A program made the translations under genes and the position numbers. From Diplonema japonicum (Eukaryota; Protista; Euglenozoa: Diplonemea): a stretch of DNA of 64,000 bases. The notes under the pieces are model-generated. The model did not search any database and was not told where the DNA came from. It worked only from the letters and a program-made list of their open reading frames with translations. Shown piece after piece: positions 6,057-59,203 of this stretch; the first letter of the stretch is position 1; every line of letters begins with the position of its first letter. The stretch spans positions 434,001 through 498,000 of the forward strand of contig OZ025709.1 of the NCBI GenBank assembly GCA_964019335.1, given 5' to 3'.

Positions 6057-9000
6057 CTAAACGGCTGAGTAGACATCGTCGACAGCATGGCAGGTACCGT
6101 TATGTGGGAAGATGTCACCCCGCAGGGAGCGGCACCTCTCGACTTCAGCATCCGGAAGTGTGTTGATCGTCTTGAAGAAGGCAGACTGGTACGCCTCGTG
6201 GTCCACGCTGCCTCGTAGCTTGGAGAGGTTCGGCTGCAGTAGGCTCTGCAACCCTTCAAAAGATCTGCAGGACTTCATGCACTTCGAGTAGACAGCAGGG
6301 ATCGAGGAGTCTTGACCGGACATTAGTATCTGCACCAGCGGGTCAGTGACATCCCAGTAGTCGCGCAGTCTCTTCTCACCTACGCGGACCAAGGCAAGGT
6401 CCTTCATGTGCGCCGTCAGGTCCTCTGTTGCAATGAGTTCAAGCATCTCTATAACGTGTTCCTTAGGCAAACATTCATCGAGTGTGAATTTCAAGAGTGT
6501 CTCTGTACACGACATTATGCTCAAATGGGGTTCTTTCTCCAATTCATCGAACCCCTCCTCACAAAGAGCGAAGACAGGAAAGTTATTTCTCAGTATGGCT
6601 GCGAAGCCTACAGTTTTAATTACTTTTTTACGAGACGAACCGAAGCTTCGAAGGAACGTGCATTCCCGTAGCGTGTACTCCTTGTGGTTTACGACAACTA
6701 GCTTCACGTCTTGCAGGTAGGAACTCGCCAGCTTGCCACCAACGAATGCCAGCAGCGCACGCAGCCCTCCAACACCCAAAGCGGAAACGTCAAGCTGGTT
6801 GATGTGCTTTTGCAAAAACGCCGCAACGAACTCCCTTGAGTCCCCCACATGCGATGCCTCGGCACTACCTGGCATAGGATCGCAGCTGAACCAGCAGCCC
6901 ATTCTTCTTAGGGATTGCAGGGGTTCCCGCCATGGCGCTGGTTCTTTTGGAGCAAGCAACGCACAATGTTTTCCGAAAAGCACAGTCTTCACTTTGCTAG
7001 TGTTATCAGCGGTATACCTACACACACGGACTTCGATCTTGTTCTCAAGAACCTCGATCTTGTTCTCAATCCAGTTGTACGGGTTTCGTTCAGAGAAATG
7101 TTTCCAAAATTCTCGTGCATCGATGTCTTGGAGATGGGACACAACATGGTTCGGGTTGCGTGGATCACACAGCCCTGTGCGCTTGGGGACGTCACTAAGT
7201 TGAGTTTTCACAACACTCAAAAAATCAATGGAGTTCAAGATACGATCTTTTGCAAGGACAATGGACTCTGTTCCACTGCTGCAGTGCCAGATGGGCTCGG
7301 AGCGGTGCATGAAGCCCTTCTTACAAAGCACGGGGCACTGCGTGAGGTCGTAGTCGGGCAGGGCCAGGAATATCCATTCAAAGAGCTCTGTATACAGGGC
7401 AGGGTCTGTGAAGGCGGTTTCAATGAACTCGTTGTGCACGCCGTCCCAATGCGGCTTAGTCAAGAAGGGGAACAACTTAAATACAGCTGCCAATGACTCT
7501 GGCACCACCACCAGCTGTGCCTTGTTGTACAGCCATTTCCGTGCCGAGCTTGACAGGTCAGTGTACTCTAATCGTAACGGCTTTTTTGGTGTTGGGGCGT
7601 GACGGCTGTTTGGTGTTGGGGCGTGACGGCTGTTTGGTGTAGTTTGCGTTATTGTTTCACTCGTAGTCGGTGGGCCCACTGAGCCTGACACTTGTGCGAA
7701 CCTGCTGCCCAAGAGCTCCTCTCGGATGTACGTTGCCGCCACAGCAGCATCGAACGGGAGGCTACAATTCTTCTTCTTGTAGCTCAAGGCTAACTTGGTG
7801 AAGATCCCAATATCTCTTTCTGTGACACTGGGCACCTGTGACACCAAAATACGTGCCCAACAGAGAGCGATGTGACTTCCATTCAGAGAACCGAACACAG
7901 CACATCCCGGCAGCACCGTTTGGAATTCTTGTACTTTGTCCGGAAAAACCTTTTGACCCGTTAGCCGTTTCGAACCGCAGAAAGCCACCTGTGTGTTCTC
8001 CTGACGCGCCACCACCCACTCTGTTCCGTTGACAGTGTGCTTCTGGGTGAGGCCGTTGTCTTCCACTTTAACTTTATATTCAGCGTTAGGAAATAACGAG
8101 ACAGGCTCGCCATTCTTACTAGCTGCGATCTTCAAATAACGCACATTCGAGAGGAACACAACTCGGTCTTCGTACTCCTTGATGTCAAGTAGACACTCGT
8201 CACGCAGTTTGAATGAAGTGAATTGCATTGCTGCCAGGTTGTCATTGACGAAGTAGTCCAGCCTGATGCACGTACCCTGCTGACAGACAGAAGAAGCCTC
8301 CCCTGACCAGTATCTGGGGATGCGTGGGTCGTTCTTCAACACGGTGACTGGCCATTCCCTTTTTTTCGCATCTTTGCAGCACATGTTGAGGTAGCAGATT
8401 GTGTCACCGCTACAAACACTTGCGTGGCAGCTGCCGTGCAGCAGCCACCTCCACTCCTCGTCAAAGCGCAACAATGGGAGCCAGTCGGTGATGACGCTGT
8501 CACTGTGCAAGTAAAGTGATGTGTTATAAGCATGCTTTTCTAAACGCCTGCTCTCGGCGTGATTTACCCCCATCTCCAGAATGACCCGCACATCCGTGGC
8601 CTCTGCATCCTCGCAGTACTGCACCCACCGTCTCACGTGTTCAGAAAAGATAGCGTCGTTCTCTATCTCGTTGCTGCGGTTAGCCCGAGTGGTGTGGTAG
8701 TTTTTGTTCTCACATTCCTCCAACAGCGGCAGCGTCATCTCGTTGATGCACAATGTACTCAGCTTGACAACCTTTAGCAGATTCGAGTATGGGATTGCTA
8801 TGTTGTGCAAGCTATGGCGCCCTTCCGGCCTTTCGTCAGCGGTGATGTCTTTAAAATACAGCTGATCAACTGGCCTCAGCACACCTTCCACATCAGGTGC
8901 AACTAATCTCTCGCAGTCCAGTTCAGGGAGATCCGGGAACGACTCAACTGCCTCCAAGCACTTCAACCATATGTTGTTTTGCATTTCTTCAGAACATTTT

Positions 9001-12000
9001 GAAGGGCGCAGTGCAAGCCCTTCAAGGACAGCTAAGTAGTTCCCTACTGACAGCTTCGCTTCGATGTGCCTAAACACGGGGTAGCCACTCATGTCAAGTG
9101 GCAGCTGTGTCACGAAGGGCTCCAGCGAGTCAGCCATGCCATCGCGTGTCACCTGCCAGCTTTCCATGAACTGCCGCAACTTGTCACTCCATATCCACTT
9201 TCCCGACCTCTTCAGCTCCCCGATGGTGTCGTAGTTGCGTTCGCATGTGAGTCTAATGTAGTGCCTCTGTATGACTTCTGCCCTTGCACTGCCATGGGCG
9301 GAGAAGGCGTTGATGCTCTCCACGAGCACTGCGTCCGTGATATTGGCAGACACCCGCACATTGAGGAACCTCTTCAAGAACACATCATCATGCAGACACC
9401 CGAAATCACCCACCACACGCACACACCCCAGGTCATCGTGGTTCCACACCTCTGTTTCTGCTGGTGCAACGAAAGTACCAAACGTGCTGCCCAGCCACGG
9501 CCCCTCCCAGTCGCACGGTTTCTCCTTTACAGGAATGTACTTGATGCTCTGGAGCTTGCGGAACATGGCATTCAAATTGTCCGCAAGATCGTTCGGTGTG
9601 CAGGCTCCAACAGAACGTCTCTTGAGGTAGTCTACGAGTACGTGGGCCGCTTTGACTGGGGACTGCGCCTTCTCTATGTTCTCAGCAGCAGTGAGGATCT
9701 CATCAGGCGCCAGTTGTGTGCGCAGGCCGACCTTCTTCAGCAGACCCTCCAAAGCAGCCTCCTTGACAAGCACGCCGCTGAGCTCGTCTCGAAGGTACGG
9801 GAACTTGTTTTCCATGACGCTCGTTTCGAGGCAGGTTGTCGGGGACACGAGACTTCCTGCGACAGAGGTGACGAACTCCAGTTGTGACACGTCCTTCTTA
9901 ACAAGGTCGAGTGTGTGCTCCAAGTTCAGAACGGTCCGCATGAGATCAGACACCTTCTGCACAGGGATCTCTTTGGCTTCAATCTTTTTAAAAACCGTTC
10001 TCAAAAGCTCTTCCGTCCTTTCGTATTTGGCAATCTTGGACCTGTCCAGCATGACAGCGATGTCGCCCCCCTCGTTCAGCACCCCGGGGAGGTCCAGCTC
10101 CACCAGTTGCTCACGAAGTTCAGCCTCTATCTCAGAAGACATCAGCAGCGCGTTTTCGGGAAGCTTACGCAGAGCCGTGCTTCCACAGACACGCAGCATG
10201 GCCGTTTGTTGGCACAGGTACAGGGTGTAGTGTCTGTTTTCTGCGCGGCTTGCCTGCACGAGCAAGTCTAGAAGATCCCGTGCATGCTTTCCTTCGGATG
10301 GTGCCCCGTGTGCCTTGACACTCTCGACCACTGCCCTCACCGCGTCACTTGGGCTGTCCCCATCGACGAATTTCTCAATCCCTTGTATTCTCGGAACCAT
10401 CTTCACACCTGTCCACCGCAGTACTTCTGACAGTGTGCCATCCTCCTCGGGAAGTAAGTAAGACCGCACACGCTGGTGCAGGGGCTCGAAGTTGAGGTCT
10501 CCGTTGCCATCGTCCACAGGCAGCACAGATAGGTCGTCCAGGCAATGGCTTTGGTTGGAGGCTCTCTTAATTGGCGTCTTTGTGTCGAGCCACGTCCACA
10601 GGATTCGTGCCCAGTCTTCGGTCACCTCAAAACCACCATCCTCGTCAAGGATGCTCGGGATGTCCTCTACCTCAAGCTGCCTTACGAACTTTGAATCTTT
10701 AAGTAAGTACTCCACCTCTTTCAAGCACCTCATCACCTTGCCCGAGTTCAAAGGGAGCACCACTTGTTCCTCCACTTGTTGCGGGAAGATAACTACGTTG
10801 TCCTCGCTGAACGCCTGCACAGTACCGTCGTAAAGGTGGCACAACATGCACCCCGCAAGGTCCTCAACATCGTCAGAACTGCGTGTGAATGTCGAAAGCA
10901 ACCACGCAGCGTCCTCGCGGCAAGGCGCGACCTTTTTGTCTCGCAGCCAGCTTCGTATCACACTTCCACTAAGCCGGGGGGGCGCTTCGTGACAGCATTC
11001 CTCGAGAGCCTCCTGCATAAAGGGGAGGACCGTAACTACTGAGCATCCTATCCTTTGGAAGACTTCCTGTTCTTTCTTCGTGCAGCTCTCTAGTTTTGTT
11101 ATCGGCGGCCACGCCTCGAGCTTCTTGCCGCAACAGGTGTAGAAAATGCCTGGGTGATCCAGAACCTTGTTGTAGAAAGCTTTTGAAAAGTACTGCACAT
11201 GCTCAGCACTGTCACCAGTGTGAGGGAACAGGTGCGTCGGTGTCGTTCCGGTCTGCGAGGCACGCACGGTAATGAGCTCCAGCAGTGCGTCCACAGCATT
11301 GTCCAGGTAGCTCTTGTTGATCTTCGACCACTTCTCCTTGTCGCCTCCGTACCCGTCTTGAACTGCGAAGATCGTGCGCCTGTCGGAGCTTGTCCAGAAC
11401 AGTGCGTCTATGTGTGCCTGGCTCTGCGTCTCGATGGGAAGGGGCAGCCTTGCGAAAAAGCGCCCTTTCTCGTCCGCGTCTTCGCCCGCCGCGTCACACA
11501 ACACGGCGACAGTGGCCCCACCGACGTGGCACATTAAGTATCTGCGTGGAGTCACAACCTCGCCATCCCCTTCGCTGTGCGTGGTGGTGCGGATGGTCAC
11601 GCATTGCGTCCCGTCTGCGTTGTCGCTGCTGCTGCGCACGAGCTCTACCAATGTCCTGTTGTCGCCGTCCCTTGTGACCTCACTTACAACAAGCTCGTTG
11701 AGCGACCTCAGGAAGAGCAAGATGAGGTGCCCTTCGCTCACATGTTTCTCCACCATGCTGCGCCACTGGGTTTCTCCAAACACGTAGTCTCTGATGTCGC
11801 TCTCGTCTGCCTTCTCCTCGCTCCGAACAGGGAGTCTTATCAACGTTCCGTCGAAGTGCCTGTCCTCCCCAAACGAGTAACCCAGTGACTTGTATGGACG
11901 GAACTGATCAGGCCACATTTCCGGGAAGTCCCTCTTGTCCATCTCCAGCTTGATGCCAGGCTTGTCGGGTGTCGCACCGACGTCCTCAAGGTGCTTCACG

Positions 12001-15000
12001 TGCGGGTCCAGGAACAGAATGGCTTGCCCGCTCAGGATGGTAGGCTGGTCCGTCAAGTTATAGCATGCGTTGAACCCCAAGCCGTGGCGGCCGATCTTCA
12101 CATCCTCCTCGCCTCGCTTGCCCCCCACGCCCAGTCTGGTGATCGCGCGCCAATCCTTGCTCGAAAATAATGCGTCGTTGTAGAAACACAGTGCCGGCCC
12201 TTGCCACGAGTGCATGCCCCTGGACAGGAGGGACTTCGTTCCGTGGCTGCGTCTGTCAAAGATCATGTGCATGCTCTTTGCGCCTGCGTCTTCAGCATTC
12301 TGAGCGAATTCCAGCGGCAATGAAGCAATCTGGTAGTCCTTCACAGTGTTCTTCAACCTGACTGTGAGAGGTTCCTGCTGTCCCATTACGCACATGCCGT
12401 CGTCGCTTCCCCACACTTGTTGCTTGCCCTCTGCCACCATCATGCTCCCAAGGTTCTGCGCACCGAGGAACAAGGCGGTAGCAAAAGGGATGTCTTCGTG
12501 CAGCAGACTCTGGTCTGCATCATCTAGTTTCGGGTCCGTCTTCAGCCACGCCATGTTGTTGACAACCACTTTCGATGCAGGGCGCAGGTACCCGTTGGTG
12601 TCCAACAGCAGTGCCCCATCAAGGCCTCCTCCTCCTTTTGAAACACTGCAACGCAGTTGTCCAATCACCTTCACACATACATCCTTCTTGTCCGCGTCAA
12701 GAGAGTCTCCAGCCGCCTTCTCGTTGATGGCATGCAGCACGCGCAGTAGGTCCTCCACACTTGGTTGTTCCGCAAGACCCTCGAATACCTTCATGTTGCT
12801 CCACGAACGGGGTATGGACCACAGGTAGGGCTCAGCATCTGTGTGCTGCGATTTGAAAACCTCATTCCTTGTAACTAATTTGAAGCCAGATGGAAGCTCC
12901 AAGCACACCCACTTGAAGTCCTCTGGAAACTCAGGTTCTGCTTCGAGATGCTTGTAGATGAGCTCGCAGGTTTCCACAGCTTCCTTCCACTGGTCGGGAC
13001 ACGCTTCCAACCCAGAGGGGAGTGTCTGCAGATTCCTCACCATGTCGTCCTCCGCAGGTTGCAGTGGGACCTCCAGCATGTCAAGCACGCTCTCAGGTAG
13101 GTCCCTGTGCAAGATAGGTGCGACTTGCCCCACAAGCCTCGCACTTTCTTCCGAGTAGCGTGTCACGTTTCCTTCACCTGCCATGCTGCAGAGGTCTGGG
13201 GACCCGTCCCTTGGCAGCCACCGACATCCTCGCACTTCTTCCAAACCCTCAAAGCCAACGGGATGCCTTTCCAGATACCGTCCCAGCATCAACGCGGTCT
13301 CTCTATCCTCTACCCTGCTGAATAGTAGACGCAGCTCATCTTCGTTCACCACATCCCTCAACCCAAGGGTTTTCAGGGGCGCCACAAGCCTCTCTTCAGC
13401 AGCCCACTCTTCACACATGGTGCACTCAAGCAGGTTGCTCAACCCCGTGAACTTTCGTTCGTCAAGCAACAGCAGGGCCTCCGAAGGGGTTCGGTATCCT
13501 CCACGGGTTGGAACGAAGGCTTCTGCTGCTAGAGCGCGGAGAGCCCTGTCGTCGCATCCATCATCCAGTGTCGGGATGATCTCTTTCAAGACGCGTGAGT
13601 AGCATGCAGGGTCAATGGCACATTTGTTTGGGATCAAACAGTTCAGCAAAACCTCTTCTACACTAGCGCTGGGCACCTCAAAGCAGCGCGTGAGGCATGT
13701 CTCCTCGCGAACAAGCATCTTGAAGTCCAACCCCGTCTCTGCGATGGTGTTCACGAGCTGCTCGTGTATGTCAGGAGGAAGTAGCTTGGTGTCGTGACCT
13801 ACGGAGGAGGACGTCATCTCTGAGCCTGGAAACTTCATGAAGAGAGGAAGTGATTTGAGGCTCTCGGCATGCTCCCTGAGAATGGGTTCCCCCGCATCTT
13901 CAAGCATCCTGCGCACTCTCAGCCACTCCTTCGCGGGTGCGGTGACCAGGTCCGGTTCCACAATCCTTCTTCTTCCAAGAGCCTCAGCAAAGCTGTCAGG
14001 ACTGTACTGTAAGAACAAGCGTTCGCAGATGTGCCTGGGGACATCGGAGGAAGCAAGTACGAAAACACCACAAGCTGCCAAGATCTCTACCAGCTCGCTG
14101 CCTAGCTTCCCGATCTCATAAAAGGTGCTTCTGCGGTTGCTGAATTCTATGACCTCCCCACCACCACCACCAGCGCCTTCAACCGGGAGCACCACCAAAG
14201 GCCCCAAGACATCTATCCCTTCCGTCCCCAAACTTCCTTCCTGTGTTGCTTCCGCCAACCACCCCCAAAGAGCTTGTTTCTGAACGGTCGTGATGTCCCC
14301 CTGCAGCAAAAACAACCGAGCCACAGTGTCGTAGTCGAGAGTGCTCAGCGTCTTCGCCTCGTGCAGCTTGCTGGCCGTCTCGACAGGCACGTCGGCAACA
14401 CGAGCCGACCCTACATCAACAAAGCTCTCCAGAAGTACCCTTTCAGCTTTCGTCTTCAGGGCAATGATGGGCTGCGGCGCGCCCCCGGCTGTCGGGAGCG
14501 CCACAACGCTGTCACACCCAAAGAGGGGGCACAGGTTGCAGCCACCGACATCACCTCCATCGCTGAGGCAGTACTCCAGGACCGTCCACGTGTCCTCGCG
14601 AGACAGGGGCCAAGACCTTTCTCTGTTTCCTTGAAGCCGTCCACGAATGGTTTCTGGTGACTCCTGCTGGCACCCTAACCCTCGGTACTCATCCCACACA
14701 CCGAGACCGAGTGGCACGACCGGGATGCCCAAAGATGTCCACAGGGGGTCAAGCGGGTTGGGGCCACCCGACGTCCTGACCTCTTCCAGCGGGCGCACCA
14801 GGAAGTCGAAGGTCTCAAGAGGCTCGCCGGCAAGGTCGCAGTGCATCCGAGGATGCGAAGGTGCGTTGCTGTAAAAGTACGTGGCGAGCTTCTTCAGGTA
14901 CGGGACACTGGTGTGCGAGGTGACGGGGAACAACCTCAACGGAGTCTCCCTGTCGAACGCGGCGCGGTGTTCCAGGTACAGCGTCCACACACGCGCAACC

Positions 15001-16238
15001 TCCTGCAGAGAGGCCTCGTTGCTGGCTGCAGCGCTGTGGTCGTCAAGCACAAGTGAGCGTCGGTCCGAGCTGGACACAAAGTTGGCGCTCACGCTGACCG
15101 GGGTGCCCGTCTGCAAATCACCCACAGGCAGCCTGCAGCAGATGCTGCCCTGGGTGTCTCGGGTGGCCTGCACCGGCACGGCGACACTTACCTCACCCTC
15201 TTCCAAGATGTGGAACTCGCACTCACTCTTTTTCGGATCATCATAATACTGGGTCAGGAGAGAGATGCTCGGGCTCAAGCTGGAGTGCCTTTCGACAGCG
15301 ATCCTCCTGCGTGCCCTCAGCACGGGCGGTCCTCCCTCTCCTTCGTTGTGTTCCCAAAGCTCAACGGTTTCTATGTTTCGAAGAAACAAGCGGTTCTTGT
15401 GACCACCCTCTTGCTCCGCACACACAAACTGCTCCCAGTCCAAACAAGACTTGCAGATTTCAGAAAGGGCGGCCGTCTCTTTTGTGCGGAGCGGCATGTG
15501 GATCACCGACCCTGGGAAGTCCCTTCCCTCCTTGAAGGCGGTCGGGTCTTCGGTGCACAGCTCGGCGATCGAGGAAAGGGGGGCGAACTGATCGGGGTAG
15601 AACCTCATTACATCTACTTTGTCCAACGAGATCCTTGCACCTGGCCGGGCAGCGTCGGCGAGACCCTTCAGGTACCTCACATGCGGGTCGAGAAAGAGTG
15701 CCCCTGACCCGCTCACCACCACAGGTATGTCAGTGATGTTGTAAGCCGCGTTGAAGCCCAACCCGTGTCGACCAATCTTCCCCTCCCTCATACGCTTCGC
15801 ACCCGTTCCAAGGGACTGCACGCCTTCCCAGTCCTCGCTCTTGAAGCTCGCGTCGTTCCAGAAGTTCAAACTGGGCCCCTGAAGATCTTGCATCTCCCGA
15901 GTCAAGAATTTATTGCCCCCCACCTTCGGTGTTAGCAGGACCACCTTGAGCTTCGTAGCACCAGCGTCATCTGCATTTTGGATCATCTCCCTGAACAGCG
16001 CCACCTCGGTGTAGTCCTTCAAGATGTTCCGCAGCCTCGTTGTCAAGGGCTCGCTCTGCCCACAGGCGCTCACTCCGAGTGGGATCTGTTGCGCGGGTTC
16101 GGATCCGAGAACAGCGGGAACAGTGGGAACAGCGGCGTTGAGACTCATTGCCCCGTAGAACTCTGCGATTGCCCTGGCTACTTTCAACCCTTCCTCCTTT
16201 ACAGAGGTTGTGGCATCCTCCTCTTGCTCTCGTGGCAT
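6057..16238 (-). CDS. Sacsin-like giant protein (~3390 aa) with two intact and one degenerate HSP90/GHKL-like sacsin repeats
   Basis: GQSEPLTTRLRNILKDY..EMIQNADDAGAT..KIGRHGLGFNAAYNITD and GQQEPLTVRLKN..EFAQNAEDAGAK..KIGRHGLGFNACYNLTD; third decayed copy WVQYCEDAEATDV. Start placed at MPREQEE (frame is open to 16544). Confidence 0.9.
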   Translation of the reverse strand: MPREQEEDATTSVKEEGLKVARAIAEFYGAMSLNAAVPTVPAVLGSEPAQQIPLGVSACGQSEPLTTRLRNILKDYTEVALFREMIQNADDAGATKLKVVLLTPKVGGNKFLTREMQDLQGPSLNFWNDASFKSEDWEGVQSLGTGAKRMREGKIGRHGLGFNAAYNITDIPVVVSGSGALFLDPHVRYLKGLADAARPGARISLDKVDVMRFYPDQFAPLSSIAELCTEDPTAFKEGRDFPGSVIHMPLRTKETAALSEICKSCLDWEQFVCAEQEGGHKNRLFLRNIETVELWEHNEGEGGPPVLRARRRIAVERHSSLSPSISLLTQYYDDPKKSECEFHILEEGEVSVAVPVQATRDTQGSICCRLPVGDLQTGTPVSVSANFVSSSDRRSLVLDDHSAAASNEASLQEVARVWTLYLEHRAAFDRETPLRLFPVTSHTSVPYLKKLATYFYSNAPSHPRMHCDLAGEPLETFDFLVRPLEEVRTSGGPNPLDPLWTSLGIPVVPLGLGVWDEYRGLGCQQESPETIRGRLQGNRERSWPLSREDTWTVLEYCLSDGGDVGGCNLCPLFGCDSVVALPTAGGAPQPIIALKTKAERVLLESFVDVGSARVADVPVETASKLHEAKTLSTLDYDTVARLFLLQGDITTVQKQALWGWLAEATQEGSLGTEGIDVLGPLVVLPVEGAGGGGGEVIEFSNRRSTFYEIGKLGSELVEILAACGVFVLASSDVPRHICERLFLQYSPDSFAEALGRRRIVEPDLVTAPAKEWLRVRRMLEDAGEPILREHAESLKSLPLFMKFPGSEMTSSSVGHDTKLLPPDIHEQLVNTIAETGLDFKMLVREETCLTRCFEVPSASVEEVLLNCLIPNKCAIDPACYSRVLKEIIPTLDDGCDDRALRALAAEAFVPTRGGYRTPSEALLLLDERKFTGLSNLLECTMCEEWAAEERLVAPLKTLGLRDVVNEDELRLLFSRVEDRETALMLGRYLERHPVGFEGLEEVRGCRWLPRDGSPDLCSMAGEGNVTRYSEESARLVGQVAPILHRDLPESVLDMLEVPLQPAEDDMVRNLQTLPSGLEACPDQWKEAVETCELIYKHLEAEPEFPEDFKWVCLELPSGFKLVTRNEVFKSQHTDAEPYLWSIPRSWSNMKVFEGLAEQPSVEDLLRVLHAINEKAAGDSLDADKKDVCVKVIGQLRCSVSKGGGGLDGALLLDTNGYLRPASKVVVNNMAWLKTDPKLDDADQSLLHEDIPFATALFLGAQNLGSMMVAEGKQQVWGSDDGMCVMGQQEPLTVRLKNTVKDYQIASLPLEFAQNAEDAGAKSMHMIFDRRSHGTKSLLSRGMHSWQGPALCFYNDALFSSKDWRAITRLGVGGKRGEEDVKIGRHGLGFNACYNLTDQPTILSGQAILFLDPHVKHLEDVGATPDKPGIKLEMDKRDFPEMWPDQFRPYKSLGYSFGEDRHFDGTLIRLPVRSEEKADESDIRDYVFGETQWRSMVEKHVSEGHLILLFLRSLNELVVSEVTRDGDNRTLVELVRSSSDNADGTQCVTIRTTTHSEGDGEVVTPRRYLMCHVGGATVAVLCDAAGEDADEKGRFFARLPLPIETQSQAHIDALFWTSSDRRTIFAVQDGYGGDKEKWSKINKSYLDNAVDALLELITVRASQTGTTPTHLFPHTGDSAEHVQYFSKAFYNKVLDHPGIFYTCCGKKLEAWPPITKLESCTKKEQEVFQRIGCSVVTVLPFMQEALEECCHEAPPRLSGSVIRSWLRDKKVAPCREDAAWLLSTFTRSSDDVEDLAGCMLCHLYDGTVQAFSEDNVVIFPQQVEEQVVLPLNSGKVMRCLKEVEYLLKDSKFVRQLEVEDIPSILDEDGGFEVTEDWARILWTWLDTKTPIKRASNQSHCLDDLSVLPVDDGNGDLNFEPLHQRVRSYLLPEEDGTLSEVLRWTGVKMVPRIQGIEKFVDGDSPSDAVRAVVESVKAHGAPSEGKHARDLLDLLVQASRAENRHYTLYLCQQTAMLRVCGSTALRKLPENALLMSSEIEAELREQLVELDLPGVLNEGGDIAVMLDRSKIAKYERTEELLRTVFKKIEAKEIPVQKVSDLMRTVLNLEHTLDLVKKDVSQLEFVTSVAGSLVSPTTCLETSVMENKFPYLRDELSGVLVKEAALEGLLKKVGLRTQLAPDEILTAAENIEKAQSPVKAAHVLVDYLKRRSVGACTPNDLADNLNAMFRKLQSIKYIPVKEKPCDWEGPWLGSTFGTFVAPAETEVWNHDDLGCVRVVGDFGCLHDDVFLKRFLNVRVSANITDAVLVESINAFSAHGSARAEVIQRHYIRLTCERNYDTIGELKRSGKWIWSDKLRQFMESWQVTRDGMADSLEPFVTQLPLDMSGYPVFRHIEAKLSVGNYLAVLEGLALRPSKCSEEMQNNIWLKCLEAVESFPDLPELDCERLVAPDVEGVLRPVDQLYFKDITADERPEGRHSLHNIAIPYSNLLKVVKLSTLCINEMTLPLLEECENKNYHTTRANRSNEIENDAIFSEHVRRWVQYCEDAEATDVRVILEMGVNHAESRRLEKHAYNTSLYLHSDSVITDWLPLLRFDEEWRWLLHGSCHASVCSGDTICYLNMCCKDAKKREWPVTVLKNDPRIPRYWSGEASSVCQQGTCIRLDYFVNDNLAAMQFTSFKLRDECLLDIKEYEDRVVFLSNVRYLKIAASKNGEPVSLFPNAEYKVKVEDNGLTQKHTVNGTEWVVARQENTQVAFCGSKRLTGQKVFPDKVQEFQTVLPGCAVFGSLNGSHIALCWARILVSQVPSVTERDIGIFTKLALSYKKKNCSLPFDAAVAATYIREELLGSRFAQVSGSVGPPTTSETITQTTPNSRHAPTPNSRHAPTPKKPLRLEYTDLSSSARKWLYNKAQLVVVPESLAAVFKLFPFLTKPHWDGVHNEFIETAFTDPALYTELFEWIFLALPDYDLTQCPVLCKKGFMHRSEPIWHCSSGTESIVLAKDRILNSIDFLSVVKTQLSDVPKRTGLCDPRNPNHVVSHLQDIDAREFWKHFSERNPYNWIENKIEVLENKIEVRVCRYTADNTSKVKTVLFGKHCALLAPKEPAPWREPLQSLRRMGCWFSCDPMPGSAEASHVGDSREFVAAFLQKHINQLDVSALGVGGLRALLAFVGGKLASSYLQDVKLVVVNHKEYTLRECTFLRSFGSSRKKVIKTVGFAAILRNNFPVFALCEEGFDELEKEPHLSIMSCTETLLKFTLDECLPKEHVIEMLELIATEDLTAHMKDLALVRVGEKRLRDYWDVTDPLVQILMSGQDSSIPAVYSKCMKSCRSFEGLQSLLQPNLSKLRGSVDHEAYQSAFFKTINTLPDAEVERCRSLRGDIFPHNGTCHAVDDVYSAV

Positions 16239-16554
16239 GTCACACACAAGGGTCACGCAGCACCCCGCAAGAGTCCAGCAGGTAGTCCCCAGGGATGCAG
16301 CCTTCTCCGGAACTCTTGGCCTACTTGTTGTGCTCGACTCTTTTTTTTTTTTCGATGCTGAAATATTGTTGTGTGTATGGCCAACAGACAATGGGTGTTT
16401 ATTAATATGAACAAACTGAAAAGAAAAGAAAAAAGAAAGAAAAAGAAGAAAGAAAGAAAAAAGTGGGAGACCGTGCTCCATACAAGTCCTGATAAAGGTG
16501 TCGCACAAGGTGGCAGAGTATATAAAGTAAGGAAGGATCGTCACTTAAAGCGTG

Positions 16555-20809: not shown

Positions 20810-22070
20810 TGTACCTATATTATTTCCACTACCCCATTTCTGGAGCGTGAAGCGGCCTGCATTTCAGCCTCAGACGCGCCCAAACTTTTGGTGGTAGAGC
20901 AGCATTCGAGAGAAACAACTCTGCAAAGGGCACATGCTATGTCGCGGAGGTTCCATGGTTTCGGCAAGCAGCGCTTATTCAGCGTGCAGGGTGGGCTGGT
21001 TATTTTTTTTTCACCACTTAAGGCCGTTGAACACAAGGTCCGGGTGCCGCAGATATGCGACTTGTCCAATTTAAACGTATTTTTATTTTCAAGTGGTTTT
21101 CAAGAGGTTTTCAGGTGGTTTTTTAAGGTGTCGTTTAGTGTGAAAAATTTCGAAACGGGCACAGGGCACATTGCTACGTTGCAATCTCTGCACAAGAACA
21201 TGGTCTAAGTGCGTTTTTTCTCTAGTTTGTTGCACACAGTGCAATTCCGTGCCTGCATCGAAAAAGCTGTGAAAGAACTTCCGATCACACAATACGAACG
21301 GCAGGCAATACAGACAAATGAAGTAGGAAACACGATCCACCATACTCAGGGCTCGCATCTCTTGGACAACACATCTCTTTGCTGCGAGATTTGAGCCTTG
21401 AGAATGAGGCAAACCCTGCGACAGCGACAACTCTGGCGTCGGCTCAGAGATCGGACTGCACTTTTCTTTCACCGCTTGGGGATCTTTGCAGCTGTCTTCT
21501 TCAGCTTTTCTGCCAGCTTCGCTTTCGCACCAGGGCTGTGTCTGCACTCCCAGTGCTCCTTCAGCTTCCCCGATCTTGACCGGATGGTCACCGCACGTTC
21601 AACACACTCAGGAGCAAGACACGGCCGCTTCTCCATGACCGTGCCATCCTTTTCCTTCGTCACTATCTTGCCAAAGTAGTACTCCTGAGAAGGGTCGATA
21701 CCATGTGCATCACCAACAGACCATGTCTTGTTGTCCCAGATGGATGTCTTGGGTGCTGTTGTAGAACATTCCTTGGCAGGTGCTTCCAACATGACTAGTG
21801 CATTTCCGGTGTTACCTTAGGTTGTAAGGCTTCAGCCATCAGAACCTTGATGGTGTCTTGCAGCTCCGTGATTCATGCTTTTGCAAGACCAAGTTTTGCC
21901 ATGGTATCGCGAAGCTGGTATGGGTTGTGGGTTATCGTCTTCATGGCCTCAAGACGATAAACCCGTTCGTCTTCCACATTTGGGGGGAAGTGGTGCAGGT
22001 ACCCGGGATCCTGTGTATACTCACACGAAACAGCAACACTGGATTGCTTTCCGTTGGTTTTCCACAAAGA
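20810..22070 (-). mobile_element. Internally deleted hAT transposase relic (BED-type zinc finger plus dimerisation-domain remnant)
   Basis: CLAPEC..KLKEHWECRH, VSYFICLYCLPFV..KFFHSFF, WNLRDIACALCRVVS; homologous to 27450-28090. Confidence 0.7.
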
Positions 22071-23196
22071 TGTTTCTCAGCGCCAGGGTGTTTTTAAATA
22101 TATTGGAGTGGGTATGGGGGCTTTTTTCTTTCACTCTTTCAATTCGCTTTCCCACCAATGGAATCAAGTTAATTTTTTATTCCCTGTACTATTATTTTAC
22201 ATTTAAAGAAGCGCATTCAGTTTGAAAAAAAAAGGGGGGGGGGTTGCAAGTTCCTTTGGAAAATATTAGCGAAACATAACAAAGGGGTAAAACCAAAACG
22301 GATTGTATTTTTTTTTTAAAAAATAAACTTCTTTTTTTTTTTTTTTTTGGCTGGCCAAGCCCTCTCCTTTCTTTTTCTCCCTCCCTGGCCTCGGGTAGGG
22401 GTTGGGGTGGGTGGGGCCCAGGTGGGTGAAAATGAAGAGTGAAAAAAGGGTACACAAGTCTATCCTGGCTTGCTTTTCTTTTACGGACGCTTTGCTCACT
22501 TTTGGGTAGGGAGGTGAGCAACTCATATCTACAAGTTTTGCCCTGGGTTACGTTTTTTCTTTTTTTTCTTTTTTCTTCTTTTTTCTTTCTGGGGGTGCGG
22601 TTGTTGGCATAACGTGGGTATAATCACTTGTTCCTTTCTTTTTCTTTTTTTTCTCTTCGTGGCGCTCTTCTTACTTCACACTTGTTCTCTTTTCTTCCTT
22701 TTTTTTCTTTTTCTGAGGGTAAACGTGTTGGGTTGTTTGGGTTCACGGGATTAGATAAGGCTGCTGCTCACAAACTTTCTTTTTCTTCCTCTTTCTTCTT
22801 TTCATGGCGCTCTTCTTATCTTTATTAATCTTACACTTGTTCTCTTTTTTTTCTTTTCCTTTTTCTTTTTTCTTTTCTTATTTTTTTTTTTTTTTTTCAT
22901 TTGTCCTGCTCATCCCATTAAATATCTCAATTCTCACACTATTTCCTTTCTTTTTATTTTTCGCTCCCGTTTTTTTTTTTCCTTTTTTTTTTTACTATTC
23001 TATTTACTTCTACTGCTGGTCCTGTGCGATCATCACTTCGATTGAACTGAAGAGGTCTGCGGTCTGCTGTGGTTTTTCGAGGAGTGCCTCTGCAAGGCCT
23101 TTGGCTCCACGTATCAGGAACTCATTTTTGAAAATATGGAAAGAAACGTAAAGAAGAAAAAACTATGTTCTTACGTTTTTCGTGGTGTGTGGGTTA

Positions 23197-23318
23197 GATA
23201 GAGCACAGACCCGGTTTCGTCCCTTACAACGACCCCTGGGTACGTGGGACTTATCAGCTGTGTCGCACCCTTTGCGGTCCGCCTGTGGCCAACAGGTGGA
23301 GGGCCAGTGTGCTCTATC
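23197..23318 (-). ncRNA. Hammerhead-ribozyme-like structured element with a non-canonical core
   Basis: Minus strand: GATAGAGCACA-CTG..CTGATAA-GTCCC..GGGAC-GAAAC-CGG-GTC-TGTGCTCTATC. This gives an 11-bp stem I, a 5-bp stem II and a GUC site. Confidence 0.5.
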
Positions 23319-23584
23319 GCGTCGGGTTGGGTTGGGGGGGCTGGCGGAAGGATGGAGGTGCTGCTGCGTTCGTTGTCATGGAAGGTGTGTGGGTGCCTGA
23401 CAAGAAGCAATCACCAATGGAATAAATATTTGTTAGTGATCATCCCTCGTCGTCGGTGGGTCCTCTTACCCACTACCTGTAAACGCAAGGTCTGGGCCAA
23501 AGCTTGGTTGGTAGGCTATTATGCGCTGCAATGCGGTTTCGTCCCTCTCCACCGGATGGAAGCATGAAAGATTGGTCATTGCAT

Positions 23585-24634
23585 TCAAGGATCACCAATG
23601 GAAGAAAGATTGGTCATCGCATTCAAGTCGACGGTTTCTAGTTTTTCGCACCTTGCCAAGAAGCAATGACCAATGGAAGAAAGATTGGTCATCGCATTCA
23701 AGTTGATGGTTTCTAGGTTTTCGCACCCATGCAAGAAGTAATGACCAATGGAAGAAAGATTGGTCATCGCATTCAAGTTGATGGTTTCTAGTTTTCTGCA
23801 CCCATGCAAGAAGCTATGACCAATGGAAGAAAGATTGGTCATCGCATTCAAGTTGATGGTTTCTAGGTTTTTGCACCCATCCAAGAAGTAATTACCAATG
23901 GAAGAAAGATTGGTCATCGCATTCAAGTCGACGGTTTCTAGTTTTTCGCACCTTGCCAAGAAGCGATCACCAATGGAAGAAAGATTGGTCATCGCATTCA
24001 AGTTGATGGTTTTTAGTTTTTCGCACCTATCCAAGAAGCAATCACCAATGGAAGAAAGATTGGTCATCGCATTCAAGTTGATGGTTTCTAGGTTTTTGCA
24101 CTCATCTAAAAAAAAATCATCAATGGTGGAAACATTGGGGAGGATGAGATCAACAGACGTCAGGTGGTCGCACCCTTGAAGAAACCCAGCGTCTATTCTT
24201 GCAACACAGCCTGTGGAGTCGGTGACAACGAGTAACCGAAGTCCAGAAGGAAGGCGTGTCCTGCTCGTGGACAAGACTTCGACAGCTGGAGAGTCCCCCA
24301 CCTCCACCACCAGAACCAGCTCAGGGTCAGCTGACACAAGCCCCTCAAGCTCCGAAACCACATCTGAGCTCTTAAGCTCCTCCAGCTGAACGGTTCTCAT
24401 CTTCGCCTCCACATGGACCACGCTGCCCTCCACGAGCCCAAGTTCCTGAACTTCCTCACCCCCGTTCTTGTCCAGGACCTCTCCCTCCCAAACCAGTTTG
24501 AACTTGCCCTCGAGTAAACCAGCAGCACACCCCGCCTTCTTGTACAGGATCCCAATTGTCTCCTTCCCTGACACTTCCACATCGTGGACCCCACCTCTCG
24601 TCTTCACGAACACTGTCATTCTCTTTCCATTCAT
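23585..24634 (-). CDS. Ubiquitin-like domain + BspA/TpLRR-type leucine-rich repeat protein; 3' end truncated by a deletion
   Basis: N-terminal MTVFVKT..FKLVWEGEVL..LGLVEGSVVHV (Ubl fold), then 25-aa repeats LETINLNAMTNLSSIGxxFLxxC. Confidence 0.8.
   Translation of the reverse strand: MNGKRMTVFVKTRGGVHDVEVSGKETIGILYKKAGCAAGLLEGKFKLVWEGEVLDKNGGEEVQELGLVEGSVVHVEAKMRTVQLEELKSSDVVSELEGLVSADPELVLVVEVGDSPAVEVLSTSRTRLPSGLRLLVVTDSTGCVARIDAGFLQGCDHLTSVDLILPNVSTIDDFFLDECKNLETINLNAMTNLSSIGDCFLDRCEKLKTINLNAMTNLSSIGDRFLARCEKLETVDLNAMTNLSSIGNYFLDGCKNLETINLNAMTNLSSIGHSFLHGCRKLETINLNAMTNLSSIGHYFLHGCENLETINLNAMTNLSSIGHCFLARCEKLETVDLNAMTNLSSIGDP
23590..24130 (-). repeat. 75-bp tandem coding repeat, about 7 units (LRR)
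   Basis: ccaatggaagaaagattggtcatcgcattcaagt recurs every 75 bp. Confidence 0.95.
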
Positions 24635-24744
24635 GTTCTTTTAGTATTGTTCTTTTTTCTGTTCTTCTTTTTTTTCGTTTTTTCTAATGTATTTTCCCTG
24701 TGTGTTTGTCTCAGAGGCTGCAGAAGTCAAATGAAGAAGAATAT

Positions 24745-25030
24745 ATGAGTTAAACTTCAAGGAGGCCGGTGTTGGCGGCGCCCTGCACAAGAACTGTCTA
24801 CTTGATTACAGGGGGTGCGCCGCGGCCGAGTTGTAGCTTCTTCTGCGTCCCGCGTCGTGTCCTTAATGTGTGCGGTGTACAGCTCAACCCCAGCCGGTGC
24901 ATCCTGGGTAACCAAGATTCTGCGCTTGTGCAGTTTGCTGCCTGTTTGTCACCCTGAGCATCTGCATTATGTTCTTCCACTCGGGCGCTACTGGTGATGA
25001 CCGACGCGGAGGTCAACAGCGAACAACAGC
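24745..25030 (-). repeat. Longest copy of a dispersed repeat family (core attaaggacacgacgcggRacgcagaagaagctacaac)
   Basis: Fragments recur at ~28610-29220, 31490-31690, 31990-32590, 32968-33180, 39932-39965, 43110-43185 and 60360-60435. Confidence 0.8.
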
Positions 25031-25141
25031 CCTCAAACTACAAGCAGAGGATCAAGAGGAGAAAAAGTGGGGGGAGTGGATGGACAGGCTGGAAAACTTC
25101 TCTGGAGTCCTAGAACAGAGGCAGTGTTGTTACGAGAATGG

Positions 25142-26221
25142 GTTGCCCCCCCCCGAGATTTTCGGGGGGGGCATGGGGGGGGGGGGCAAATCCAGGGGGG
25201 CGGGGGGGTGGGGGGGGGCAAAAAAATTTTTTTTCAACCCCAATATTGCCAGCCATGCCCCATTCCACCCAAGGTAGGCTATCAGGTAGTCTTTTCTGAC
25301 AGATTTTCTGGTTCTATTGGGGTGTCTTGTTGGGTTAGGTTATTTTTTAAAACAACCTGCCAATAAAGTACAGTAAAAACAGGGGGGGGGGGGGGGTAAA
25401 TACAAAGAATGAGAAAGGTAAGTTATAAAGGAAAGAAAAATGACAGATGGACCATTACTAGGCCAAGTACAGGTGCCCTTAGTGAAAAAAATCTTATTTT
25501 CTGAGGTAAAATATCACTTTTCAGGTGTTTTTGACAATTTTTTTTGTGAGGAAAAAAATTCTTTGGGCACTTTTTTTTTGACCCATGACCATCTCACTTT
25601 CACTATTAGCCTCATTAAGGTCTAGAATAGGTATTTTTGAGGGGAAAAAAAATTTTTTTTGAGAAAAAATCAATTTAAGGGTGTTTTTGGCCACTTTTTT
25701 TGGGAGGAAAAACAATTTTTTTGGACACTATTTTTTTTTTTTTTCCAGCACCCCATGCACCCAATAAAGTACAGTAAAAAAAAGGGGGGGTAAATACAAA
25801 GAATGAGAAGGGTAAGTCATAAAGGAGAGAAAACCAACAGATGGACCATTACTAGGCCTGATATAGGTACCCTTTTAGAAAAAAATCAATTTTTCTGAGG
25901 TAAAAAACCACTTTTCAGGTGTTTTTGACCACTTGTTCATGTGAAAAATAATTTTTTTTGGGCACCTTTTTTTTTGACCCCCAAACTTCTCTTTCACCCC
26001 ACTTCACTAAAAGCCTCTATTAAGGCCTAGGATAGGTACTTTTGAAAAAAAAAAAAAATTTTTTTTGGAAAAAAAATCAATTTTTGGGTGTCTTTGACAA
26101 CTTTTTTTGGGTGGAAAAAAATTTTTTTGGACACTATAAAAAAAATTTTTTTGCCCCCCCACCCCCCCCACCCCCCTGGATTTGCCCCCCCATGCCCCCC
26201 TGAAAATCTCGGGGGGGCAAC
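25142..26221. mobile_element. Non-autonomous TIR element (MITE-like) with ~90-bp G/C-tract TIRs and two internal ~400-bp direct repeats
   Basis: GTTGCCCCCCCCGAGATTTTC..GGCAAATCCAGG at left is mirrored by CCTGGATTTGCC..GAAAATCTCGGGGGGGCAAC at right. Internal units start at 25361 and 25762. Confidence 0.8.
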
Positions 26222-26480
26222 CAGTGTTGGTCCAGACCCTTGAGGGACTCAGGGGACTCCAAGGGACAGGACAGGAGTCCCCTGAAATTTTCAGGGGTCT
26301 GGAGGGGACTCAGGGGACTCTTGGGACCAAAAAATTTCTTTGTGTTTTTTGTGTCACAAAGACCCAAATTTAGGCTGGGGCTTGCATTTTTTTGGTACTT
26401 TTGGTTTCAAAAGTTCAAAAAAAGAGGTCCTAGGTTTGGGTGGGATCTTAGGCAAGGCTCATACTACCTTGTTGTGACTA

Positions 26481-26517
<37 letters not shown>

Positions 26518-27129
26518 CCTGGCATGTATTCCTTATCATGACAAAAGTACAACACAAATTATGTAAAAAAAAAAAAAAGAAGAAGAAAAAATCTAACTTT
26601 CAGTTATGAAAGGGCAGCCCTTCTGGGAGTTTTTTTTAGAAATTTCGACACAGAAAATATTTTATACACTGTATGGTACAATATAAAACAACACTTTGGT
26701 GTGTTGTGTTGTGTTGTGTTGTGTTACTTCAACACATTTTTTGTGTCAAGTGTATGAAATGTGAACAGAAAACACATCATGTTGCTTCACATTGTGTTGC
26801 ATTGCTGTCAGAGTCAATGTGTATTTATACAGTATTTAGCCTTTGTTTATCATTTTCTTTGTATTATTTTTTACAATTAACAGATAAAATGATTGTGGTA
26901 CTTGTTCTGCTTCTGTTCTTCGTTCCCGACACCGAAGCTGTGCCAAGTAGCAAAGAAGGTGAAAGGGGTGCAGAGGGTGCAGAGGATAAGCACCAGAAAC
27001 ATGACTGCCAACTCAACATGGCATGGCATGGGCTATGTTCAGGTAAATCTGAACTAGAGGAGGAGGAAGAAGAGGAGGAAATCAATACAAAAATGAAGAG
27101 AAAAGTTTAAACATTTGAAAAAAAAAAAA

Positions 27130-36692: not shown

Positions 36693-37090
36693 ATGAATGG
36701 AAAAGAAAAAGAGACCAGATGAAGGGATGAACTATGACAGTGTGTTCGTGAAGACGAGAGGCGGGGTTCACAATGTGAAAGTGTCGGGAAAGGAGACGGT
36801 GGGGAGCCTGTACAAGAAGGCGGGGTGTGCTGCTGGTTTACTCGAGGGCAAGTTCAAATTGGTTTTGTAGGGACAGAGGAAGTTCAGGAACTTGGGAAAC
36901 AAATATTTATTTTCCAAAGCCTCTTGTTAGTTCCGCGGTCCGGTGGGAAGGGACGAAACCGCATTGCAACGCAATCCCAAGCTGGCTTTGGCCGAACCTT
37001 GTGTACAGGTAGTGGGTAAGAGGACCCGCCGACAACAGGGATGATCACTAACAAATATTGATTCCATTGGTAATAGAGGTAATCACATAA
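36693..37090 (+). pseudogene. Deleted Ubl-LRR family copy carrying the same structured insert as the 23.5-kb copy
   Basis: MTVFVKTRGGVHNVKVSGKETVGSLYKKAGCAAGLLEGKFKLV; upstream DNA shared with 24690-24740; insert 36940-37057 is followed by the LRR remnant ttccattggt. Confidence 0.8.
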
Positions 37091-41600: not shown

Positions 41601-41954
41601 ATATAGACGATTTGAAAAAAAATCTTTTACGCAAAGGGCTTTCAATGCAATACGGCCCGGCCCTTTCTTGCCGGCGGGGTCCTGCGCGGAAAATATGAAA
41701 AATATAAACTAAATGCTGCCCTAACTTAACAAGAAAATGAAAAAATAAAAAAAAACGCCAGCCCAAATTTACCGAGATGAGAAACAACTGTACAACTATT
41801 GTGTCCTTACCAACTCGGTTGAGGGTTTTATACCTAAGGTACCGAGGAGGGTGAACGAGGGGCCGAAGGCCACACCACAGCAGAAAGGTTCGATCAAGAG
41901 ATAGATTGAGACTCTTCAGGCGTCCTGCCACATACCGCAGGTACCCTTAAATGT

Positions 41955-41992
<38 letters not shown>

Positions 41993-42361
41993 ACTTGTTT
42001 TTTGTACCCCCTCTCAGGCACTTCAGGAACGATATTTTTGACAATGTTGTGGGGGTGGGCCCTGCTGTGGGCACCCTCTCTCTAGAATTGGGACATCTGG
42101 AGGCATTTCCGGGGGCATATAGCCCCGGCGTTGCGCTAGAATAGCTTTTTTTGAAGTTTTGAAAATTTACCCCCTGGTGGGCAAAAATGGTCCGTTGGTA
42201 GATGGTTAAATAGAAAAAAAAAAAGAAAAAAAAAGGGGGAAAAAAGGAAAGAAATAAATATAAAGGTGCACAATTGCTCAAGCCGACGAAAGCACAAACG
42301 TCTCAACACAATAATATTTCAGGGGGAGAATCGAGGATCGAAGAAGAAAAAAAAAGGGAAA

Positions 42362-58849: not shown

Positions 58850-59203
58850 ATATAGACGATTTGAAAAAAAATCTTTTACGCAAAGGGCTTTCAATGCAAT
58901 ACGGCCCGGCCCTTTCTTGCCGGCGGGGTCCTGCGCGGAAAATATGAAAAATATAAACTAAATGCTGCCCTAACTTAACAAGAAAATGAAAAAATAAAAA
59001 AAAACGCCAGCCCAAATTTACCGAGATGAGAAACAACTGTACAACTATTGTGTCCTTACCAACTCGGTTGAGGGTTTTATACCTAAGGTACCGAGGAGGG
59101 TGAACGAGGGGCCGAAGGCCACACCACAGCAGAAAGGTTCGATCAAGAGATAGATTGAGACTCTTCAGGCGTCCTGCCACATACCGCAGGTACCCTTAAA
59201 TGT

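Follow-up and report, generated by a model that had tools for sequence, protein, structure and literature searches.

Why should the repeat units of a gene differ from one another only at sites that change the encoded amino acid? The question is raised by a stretch of 64,000 nucleotides (nt) of the Diplonema japonicum genome (GenBank assembly GCA_964019335.1, contig OZ025709.1, positions 434,001 to 498,000 of the forward strand; here called the window, with positions counted from its first letter), in which a gene encodes a ubiquitin-like (Ubl) domain fused to near-identical leucine-rich repeats (LRRs). A first-pass annotation, made from the sequence, had read the gene as an intracellular recognition module diversified by repeat shuffling and selection and possibly by adenine-biased mutagenesis. 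The intracellular location, the selection at few codons, and the reshuffling of units between genes stood up to analysis, but the mutator idea did not. The account that we favor, and judge probable, is that of a germline, young, and rapidly expanding family of cytosolic Ubl-LRR proteins with a selected, putative binding stripe and a Ubl that would serve for docking.

A ubiquitin-like domain precedes TpLRR-type repeats

The window gene is composed of the following parts, given with the basis of each assignment.

23585-24634, minus strand: open reading frame (ORF) of 349 amino acids (aa) with Ubl, linker, and BspA/TpLRR-type repeats, a 3′-truncated family member (ORF list, translation, Pfam, and AlphaFold2 [AF2])
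24386-24619, minus strand: Ubl (beta-grasp) domain, aa 6-83, beginning MTVFVKT and lacking a C-terminal GG (Pfam PF00240 and Foldseek)
24077-24385, minus strand: aa 84-186, a family-conserved region made of a helical linker and two degenerate N-terminal LRR turns (alignment, AF2 secondary structure, and a dN/dS of about 0.55 for the N-terminal module)
23627-24076, minus strand: six complete 75-bp (25-aa) units LNAMTNLSSIGxxFLxxCxxLxTxx, aa 187-336 (Tandem Repeats Finder [TRF], translation, and unit comparison)
24635-24741, minus strand: about 100 nt 5′ of the ATG, a candidate family 5′ untranslated region or control region (blastn against 31 family loci)

Pfam analysis of the window protein returned LRR_5 (PF13306) at 89.1 bits against a gathering threshold of 27.7 (E = 2.8e-25), and a model built by AF2 from a 12-sequence family alignment had a mean pLDDT of 88.6 and a pTM of 0.78. 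When the model was searched with Foldseek, the repeat part matched the TpLRR structure 6mlx (TMt 0.69, root mean square deviation [rmsd] 3.3 over 216 columns), with further matches to 4gt6, 4fs7, and 4h09 at a probability of 1.0, and a phmmer search of Protein Data Bank sequences also matched the repeat part to 4fs7 (E = 4.9e-17). The unit, written as LETIxLNAMTNLSSIGxxFLxxCxK, fits the TpLRR consensus LxxIxL(P)xxLxxIGxxAFxxCxx at the core and has a first loop that is 2 residues longer. We conclude that the repeats belong to the BspA/TpLRR class of LRRs, with which they agreed in every feature tested.

The protein begins MNGKR-MTVFVKT, and the ubiquitin family PF00240 was assigned to aa 8-79 at 26.0 bits (E = 8e-6), marginally above the cutoff of 25.4. 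The same family was precomputed on the relatives P0001 and P0089 and on many proteins of the European Nucleotide Archive (ENA), and the Ubl of the AF2 model matched NEDD8, ISG15, and ubiquitin in Foldseek (TMt 0.74 to 0.84, rmsd 1.6 to 2.4 over 77 to 82 residues). No di-glycine follows the Ubl of the window protein, the domain instead continuing into ...VVHVEAKMRTVQLEEL, and neither a signal peptide nor a hydrophobic segment was found in the protein, in agreement with the fusion of an intracellular Ubl to LRRs annotated earlier. The approximately 100 nt upstream of the ATG were 79 to 91% identical to the same region of most family members sampled. We conclude that the Ubl is, as judged from its sequence context, an integral domain and not a conjugatable modifier.

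Six codons of the repeat unit are under diversifying selection

The array of 75-bp repeats delimited by TRF spans 23591-24138 and amounts to 7.3 copies, with 89% matches. The six complete units vary at 13 nucleotide columns that fall in nine codons (12, 13, 16, 17, 19, 20, 22, 24, and 25), and all of the differences change the amino acid, the alleles being exactly those listed in the first-pass annotation. The proportion of synonymous differences (pS) among the window units was 0.017 and that of nonsynonymous differences (pN) was 0.112, with the pS stemming solely from a partly synonymous step on one of the two possible routes from GAT to GCA; over the 19 nonhypervariable codons, pS was 0. With 21% of sites synonymous and a minimum of approximately 15 mutational events, the chance of observing zero synonymous changes was approximately 0.03. 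The window gene by itself is therefore suggestive and only nominally significant, not decisive, and the weight is carried by the family-wide data.

The window protein had at least 152 matches in its own genome, for which the published assembly of strain YPF1604 comprises 62.3 Mb and was made from PacBio HiFi reads (PMC13598402). The conserved 30-nt core of the unit occurred 632 times, against 0 occurrences for a control, which points to about 630 units in at least 150 loci. Family members lie in same-strand tandem arrays, for example, on C95, where a 50-kb stretch holds ten genes that have 7 to 26 units each. Units were in register in dozens of loci, and even the longest arrays, of up to 26 units, remained open. 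For the analysis of codons, 371 in-register units were cut from 30 loci, and 329 of these came from the young main subfamily.

Among the 329 units, nonsynonymous diversity (piN) was 0.19 to 0.54 at each of six hypervariable codons (12, 13, 16, 17, 19, and 25), and the joint ratio to synonymous diversity (piN/piS) was 6.35, with a bootstrap over genes giving 5.4 to 7.6. The remaining 19 codons had a piN/piS of 0.31 (0.25 to 0.38), and the N-terminal module of young members had a pS of 0.03 and a pN/pS of 0.56. Synonymous diversity of the young units was approximately 0.06, and synonymous polymorphism was seen at codon 9 (TCC/TCT, 186:143) and at codon 16 (GAA/GAG and TCT/TCA). Thus, the claim that units lack synonymous differences holds within the window gene but not across the family, and absence of synonymous change is a trait of very young arrays and not of the family as such. 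We conclude that six codons are under strong positive diversifying selection and that the rest of the unit is under purifying selection, as the earlier suggestion of selection-diversified repeats had anticipated.

The old paralogs provide a measure of what the fold tolerates. In them, 13 noncore positions are about equally free to vary, with an entropy of approximately 3 bits, and position 25 is mostly Asp. The young subfamily varies at five of those 13 positions, in addition to an N/D dimorphism at position 25, and the other eight are fixed. Simple relaxed constraint is excluded because only five of the positions that are free in old paralogs vary in the young subfamily, and import by conversion from old paralogs is excluded because it would also change the other eight positions and the synonymous sites. 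An independent expansion of the architecture in another eukaryote is likewise most variable at positions 12, 13, 16, 17, and 19, and additionally at position 9.

The best-surviving rival to selection is neutral decay, in which young selfish or nonfunctional repeats are multiplied by unequal crossing-over or mobile elements and the variable sites are unconstrained. Such decay could account for the many members with broken or aberrant ends, among them the truncated window copy, for copies within segmental duplications and near transposons, and for the lack of a transcript match to the young subfamily in EukProt. It predicts a piN/piS of about 1 at the variable codons, however, and the observed range lies well above that value, whereas the other 19 codons and the N-terminal module are under purifying selection. 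Moreover, the longest arrays are open, and the eight further surface positions that are free in old paralogs are fixed in the young subfamily. We conclude that neutral decay is an unlikely explanation for the hypervariable codons.

Variants are inherited unit haplotypes that are reused between genes

The hypervariable residues did not assort freely. Only 153 distinct hypervariable tuples were present in the 329 units, against 260 expected under independence, and the hypervariable positions were in strong linkage with each other. Linkage extended to a synonymous marker in codon 9, which was associated with the residue at position 13, 12 nt away, with a Cramer's V of 0.63. Differences between units of one gene were as large as those between units of different genes, exact tuples were repeated at a frequency of 3 to 7% within genes versus 1.2% between genes, and blocks of several units were common to close gene pairs only. 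When the window gene was compared with the main subfamily, pS was 0.044 in the units and approximately 0.11 in the N-terminal modules, and because the units are the less diverged of the two, we conclude that repeats have been exchanged between paralogs. Repeat shuffling had been proposed for the window gene, and unit types are indeed reused and rearranged between genes.

Germline incompleteness of the kind known from the variable lymphocyte receptors (VLRs) of lampreys was not found among the family loci, which are complete ORFs that run from the ATG to the C-terminal tail. Contigs of four runs, which stem from three studies of 2020-2024, showed no variant of the window gene, an observation that weighs lightly as the kind of library is unrecorded. 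We conclude that the variants are inherited germline unit haplotypes, spread by duplication of units and genes and by ectopic exchange, and that they are neither somatic nor the product of a template-directed mutator.

Near-identical tandem units that differ at few positions could also constitute a modular reader of a linear polymer, be it a nucleic acid, a glycan, or a filament, with one element read by each unit. The transcription activator-like (TAL) effectors of Xanthomonas are the known precedent, and the Ubl-LRR genes resemble them in having units that are near-identical in DNA, few variable residues, a variable number of units (6 to 26 or more), and basic ends. In particular, the C-terminus LNLKRKKRKVGV and the N-terminus MKRKRS of some members resemble classical nuclear localization signals, and the KRK(KRK)V tail would serve as one. 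TAL effectors differ, however, in being bacterial injected effectors made of 34-aa helical hairpins in which two variable residues code for DNA bases, whereas in the Ubl-LRR family six positions vary in more than 150 combinations, and nothing points to DNA binding. The TAL effector class itself was rejected, as its defining 33- to 35-aa helical repeat with a variable di-residue at 12/13 is replaced here by a 25-aa unit of LRR fold. For a reader of any kind, the 153 tuples far exceed a small code, and no periodicity was detected among neighboring units in either the N/D dimorphism or the hypervariable similarity. The prenylation boxes and tail anchors of older relatives also point to membranes, not to chromatin, and to our knowledge, there is no LRR that reads polymers unit by unit. 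We consider a unit-by-unit reader to be quite improbable.

The variation shows no adenine specificity

The proposal of adenine-biased mutagenesis would implicate a deaminase-type mutator or a template mechanism that is specific for adenine, like that of diversity-generating retroelements (DGRs), in writing the variation of the GxxFLxxCx segment. DGRs resemble the Ubl-LRR family in that nonsynonymous variation is focused on a short segment and affects NNY-type codons; here, codons 12 and 13 vary as NNT or NNC with the third base fixed. It had been noted that an A allele occurs at all but one of the variable positions, and this is literally correct for 12 of the 13 columns of the window gene but carries no signal. 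Family-wide, 7 of 21 columns with an A consensus were variable, as were 12 of 54 columns with another consensus base (Fisher p = 0.38). Variation was absent from 14 A columns, and G- and T-consensus columns were just as variable. Among 19 variable columns with a minor allele of at least 3%, an A was present at 15, a G at 13, a T at 12, and a C at 6, and changes occurred in all directions, transitions and transversions alike. We conclude that A/G transitions, together with the A-rich codons that polar residues have, account for the A alleles.

A search for an A-rich template unit found none. At most 9 of the 12 A's at hypervariable columns were present in any sampled unit, Asn-Asn at positions 12 and 13 in none, and an AAY-AAY unit at these positions was absent from the entire genome. 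The linkage of variants with each other and with the synonymous marker, and the lack of variants across the runs of three studies, also speak against ongoing rewriting. As for a dedicated reverse transcriptase, the only such ORF in the window (62186-63937, plus strand) lies 38 kb from the gene and shows a generic RVT_1 match (E = 9e-17); the first-pass annotation had assigned it to a CRE/SLACS-type retrotransposon with a spliced leader. No reverse transcriptase was seen among ORFs of at least 110 aa in the C95 and C91 arrays, four of which were run through Pfam. The reverse transcriptase domain of the window ORF is followed by a degenerate 18/48-bp proline-rich tandem repeat (63696-63930).

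DGRs also differ from the family in scale, as a system with one template repeat and one variable repeat would not match hundreds of inherited targets (approximately 630 in at least 150 genes). The DGR was rejected as a candidate, since the variation lacks adenine specificity and since neither a template repeat nor, among the ORFs inspected, a dedicated reverse transcriptase next to the genes was found. Directed hypermutation of any such type is very improbable. Least probable of all is that misassembled or collapsed repeats created the mosaic, for although tandem near-identical repeats are hard to assemble, the assembly was built from HiFi reads, which are taken to span arrays of 0.5 to 2 kb, units are in frame in dozens of loci, and contigs of the four runs cover the gene without a listed difference.

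Variable positions are predicted to lie off the concave sheet

In the AF2 model, DSSP assigned to each unit a main strand, T23-I24-x25, which forms the concave sheet, and a short second strand, S9-I10. The segment from G11 to K20, which holds positions 12, 13, 16, 17, and 19, was nonregular. These variable positions are the x's of the TpLRR motif IGxxAFxxCx and lie between the core residues I10, F14, L15, C18, and L21. The concave face (E22, T23, N/D25, and N2) is almost invariant. In LRR proteins, the segment that follows the sheet lies on the convex or lateral side, and equal positions of successive turns are about 5 Å apart. With this spacing, the five positions should therefore form a continuous stripe. 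We conclude that the five hypervariable positions are predicted to lie outside the hydrophobic core, in the part of the turn that comes after the second short strand, on the convex or lateral side and not on the canonical concave sheet.

Relatives carry membrane anchors, and older paralogs are transcribed

The N-terminal 170 aa, used as the query of an exhaustive HMMER search, yielded 59 cluster representatives; 22 were looked up, of which 20 were transcripts of D. japonicum and 2 were transcripts of Diplonema ambulator. Ten of approximately 35 older paralogs end in a CaaX box (CIVC in P0020, CSIL in P0029, CLLM, CCVM, and others), which in many cases is preceded by a polybasic stretch, and two of the approximately 35 have a C-terminal transmembrane segment. 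The window protein (...SSIGDP) and the young subfamily (...KRKVGV) do not end in CaaX. From these CaaX boxes and tail anchors, the superfamily is predicted to be cytosolic and often membrane tethered, on the cytosolic side of membranes. The earlier claim of an intracellular protein is supported by these features of relatives and by the lack of a signal peptide in the window protein.

Two D. japonicum transcripts in EukProt, P0020 (CIVC) and P0017 (tail anchor), were 100% identical to the genome over their full length. Transcript P0001 was at best 69% identical to the genome among the 120 of 576 candidates scored, a mismatch that is likely due to the partial scoring of candidates or to chimeric transcript assembly. 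In run X5 (longest contig 7.4 kb), depth was 47 to 182 over the window gene versus 1 to 2 in the 3′ flank, although the kind of run is unrecorded and paralogs may contribute. An exact 89-nt piece from the same run, again of unrecorded kind, mapped to 24311-24399 in the unique linker region. We conclude from the Trinity transcripts with exact genome matches that the older paralogs are transcribed.

The same Ubl and TpLRR architecture recurs in at least 462 proteins of 300 to 530 aa (P0088, P0089, and the P0095-P0212 group) from another eukaryote, encoded on ENA contigs of 0.1 to 2.7 Mb, and approximately 20% of these end in CaaX (CSVS or CVCM). An F-box is fused to the same IGxxFLxxCxxL subtype in P0004, from a proteobacterial metagenome-assembled genome, and in P0085 and P0092, which are Joint Genome Institute metagenome proteins. 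In these domain combinations, the IGxxFLxxCxxL subtype is joined repeatedly to modules of the ubiquitin system. The nearest feature matches in the ESM Atlas were clusters of ubiquitin/Rad60-SLD and DUF285 (BspA-like LRR), one with a 100% viral label, at scores of 0.81 to 0.83 that are below the reliable range. A scan of IMG/VR with the family alignment found no relative.

The window copy is truncated and has broken relatives nearby

The 3′ end of the window gene and further homologous stretches of the window are as follows.

23585-23626, minus strand: seventh unit, cut after IGD, with the junction GAT-CC-TTGAATG giving P-stop (translation)
23566-23588, minus strand: out-of-frame start of a further unit (LNAMTNLS...), a relic of the lost 3′ part of the array (translation)
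23401-23420, minus strand: isolated unit-core relic SIGDCFLSG, approximately 170 bp downstream of the stop (translation)
42384-43036, plus strand: broken family copy with the N-terminal module and one or two units, 79% aa identity, and stop codons (genome search)
59633-60285, plus strand: second broken copy, identical to 42384-43036, in a segment duplicated 17.25 kb away (ORF list and genome search)
36739-36891, plus strand: 51-aa Ubl fragment, 76% identity (genome search)

The stop codon of the window gene arises because the seventh unit joins the start of the next unit out of register. Canonical members end in a special last unit and LNLKRK(KRK)VGV, and older subfamilies end in a helical C-cap, but the window copy has neither, and blastn against the 31 family loci found no homology of its 3′ flank to the 3′ flanks of other members. 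The count of four copies in 64 kb given in the first-pass annotation is partly right: one is an intact ORF, and the other three are relics, two of them identical broken copies and one the 51-aa fragment. We conclude that the window copy is a 3′-truncated, probably decaying member, which has lost the 3′ end of the array and the C-terminal cap and may be turning into a pseudogene.

Other features were observed around the gene and its paralogs. A dispersed repeat of approximately 280 bp lies about 100 bp upstream of the ATG (24730-25010). It has 1453 candidate genomic copies, of which 40 were scored and were 92 to 96% identical. All four runs cover it at enormous depth, which reaches 1e5 in run X5, and it resembles a short interspersed nuclear element or a miniature inverted-repeat transposable element. 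Rfam, searched on both strands of 21000-27000 with permissive filters, gave nothing at E ≤ 0.1, leaving a hammerhead-like element downstream of the gene (23197-23318) without Rfam support. The broken copies at 42384-43036 and 59633-60285 belong to a segmental duplication (40600-43050 and 57850-60300, offset by 17,249 bp) with identical ORF sets and one broken Ubl-LRR copy in each part. Two further long ORFs are present in the window, as follows.

6057-16544, minus strand: 3495-aa ORF with a sacsin domain (E = 6e-118)
44925-53927, plus strand: 3000-aa ORF for which Pfam gave nothing at E ≤ 0.001, with a nested 66/108/174-bp tandem repeat as its 3′ part (52310-52790)

In the C95 array, the intervals between Ubl-LRR genes (251443-252318 and 258301-259089) contain a recurring ORF for a Zeta-toxin-type P-loop kinase (E = 4e-14) and a recurring protein kinase fragment (E = 9e-27). 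A recurring 759-aa ORF without a Pfam match (L038:7066-9342) is also found between Ubl-LRR genes of that array.

Discussion

How might such a family work? The protein plan comprises a nonconjugatable Ubl head, a helical linker, a solenoid in which 6 to 26 or more near-identical 25-residue turns of the BspA/TpLRR type follow one another, and a short polybasic tail. Tandem duplication, both of single units and of entire genes, has recently multiplied the units, repeats have been exchanged between paralogs, and selection favors new residues at the six codons, with haplotypes reused in new orders. Stacked turn on turn, the variable positions would form a long variable binding stripe, and the Ubl head would dock the bound target onto ubiquitin-binding machinery, such as the proteasome, p97, or autophagy receptors. 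Placement on the cytosolic face of membranes or in the nucleus would depend on the basic C-terminal tail or, in older paralogs, on the CaaX box or tail anchor.

Several points weigh against a selected, functional repertoire of this kind. The surface assignment is drawn from DSSP on a model and from general LRR geometry, and the link to ubiquitin machinery is drawn from domain architecture. The piN/piS of recombining repeats is a diversity ratio and not a tree-based test of selection. EukProt contains no transcript that is more than 64% identical to the window gene or to a canonical member, although Trinity may have collapsed near-identical repeats and so hidden transcripts of the young subfamily. 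Finally, many family members have aberrant 3′ ends, and part of the family may be decaying DNA.

The Ubl-LRR family shares features with several known systems. BspA-like proteins (the Treponema pallidum TpLRR protein, surface proteins of Bacteroides and Faecalibacterium, TvBspA, and the Entamoeba families) have the same LRR subtype and large lineage-specific expansions in protists. BspA-like and TpLRR proteins are secreted or surface exposed and have divergent repeats. The Ubl-LRR proteins differ from them in that they lack a signal peptide, carry an N-terminal Ubl, have near-identical units that are each 2 residues longer, and end in a tail (CaaX, tail anchor, or polybasic) of the cytosolic anchoring type. 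Lamprey VLRs and the LRRs of plant and animal NLR receptors are alike in that exposed LRR residues are diversified, genes are clustered, and evolution proceeds by birth and death with positive selection. VLRs are assembled somatically from cassettes, however, and both VLRs and NLRs vary on the concave beta-sheet, whereas the Ubl-LRR genes are complete in the germline, show no sign of somatic assembly, have no NB-ARC or NACHT domain, and are predicted to vary on the convex or lateral side. By analogy, the evolutionary signature of the family appears to be that of other LRR recognition repertoires.

Two further systems join a binding module to the ubiquitin pathway. FBXL2 and FBXL20 (F-box, LRR, and CaaX) combine an LRR binding module with a ubiquitin-system module, and they share the CaaX box with older paralogs of the family; in the Ubl-LRR proteins, the head is a beta-grasp Ubl, the LRR subtype is unlike the cysteine-containing FBXL type, and no F-box was found in the window protein by Pfam at E ≤ 0.01. 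The UBL-UBA shuttles Rad23, Dsk2, and Ddi1 have an N-terminal noncleavable Ubl before a cargo-binding module. Their cargo module is a ubiquitin-associated (UBA) domain that binds ubiquitin chains, compared to a hypervariable LRR here. Because the Ubl precedes a putative cargo module in both, we infer that targets may be handed over to ubiquitin receptors. No publication was found that links diplonemids to a Ubl-LRR family, and neither the D. japonicum genome note nor the Paradiplonema papillatum genome paper mentions one; a large Ubl-LRR family is apparently undescribed.

A more specific form of the preferred reading is that the family supplies a germline set of "intrabody-like" receptors in the cytosol. 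The stripe on the LRR rod, unique to each gene and rich in Tyr, Arg, Ser, Gly, Asp, and His, would bind foreign proteins, such as effectors or surfaces of the Holosporales endosymbionts of D. japonicum or viral proteins, and the built-in Ubl tag would pass them to the proteasome or autophagy without an E3 ligase. We regard this as a speculative idea and rather unlikely as it stands. If true, innate immunity inside cells would gain a new form, and engineered degraders would have a counterpart in nature.

Few marine heterotrophs are as abundant and diverse as the diplonemids, and how they recognize prey, viruses, and endosymbionts is barely known. Near-identical units whose fast-evolving residues would form one stripe, together with a Ubl and, in older members, membrane anchors, are hallmarks of a recognition repertoire in an apparently undescribed architecture. 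The predicted stripe off the concave face and the near-perfect repeats would make the solenoid an attractive scaffold for protein engineering. Moreover, a related expansion of several hundred genes in at least one other eukaryote indicates that the family is not an oddity of a single species.

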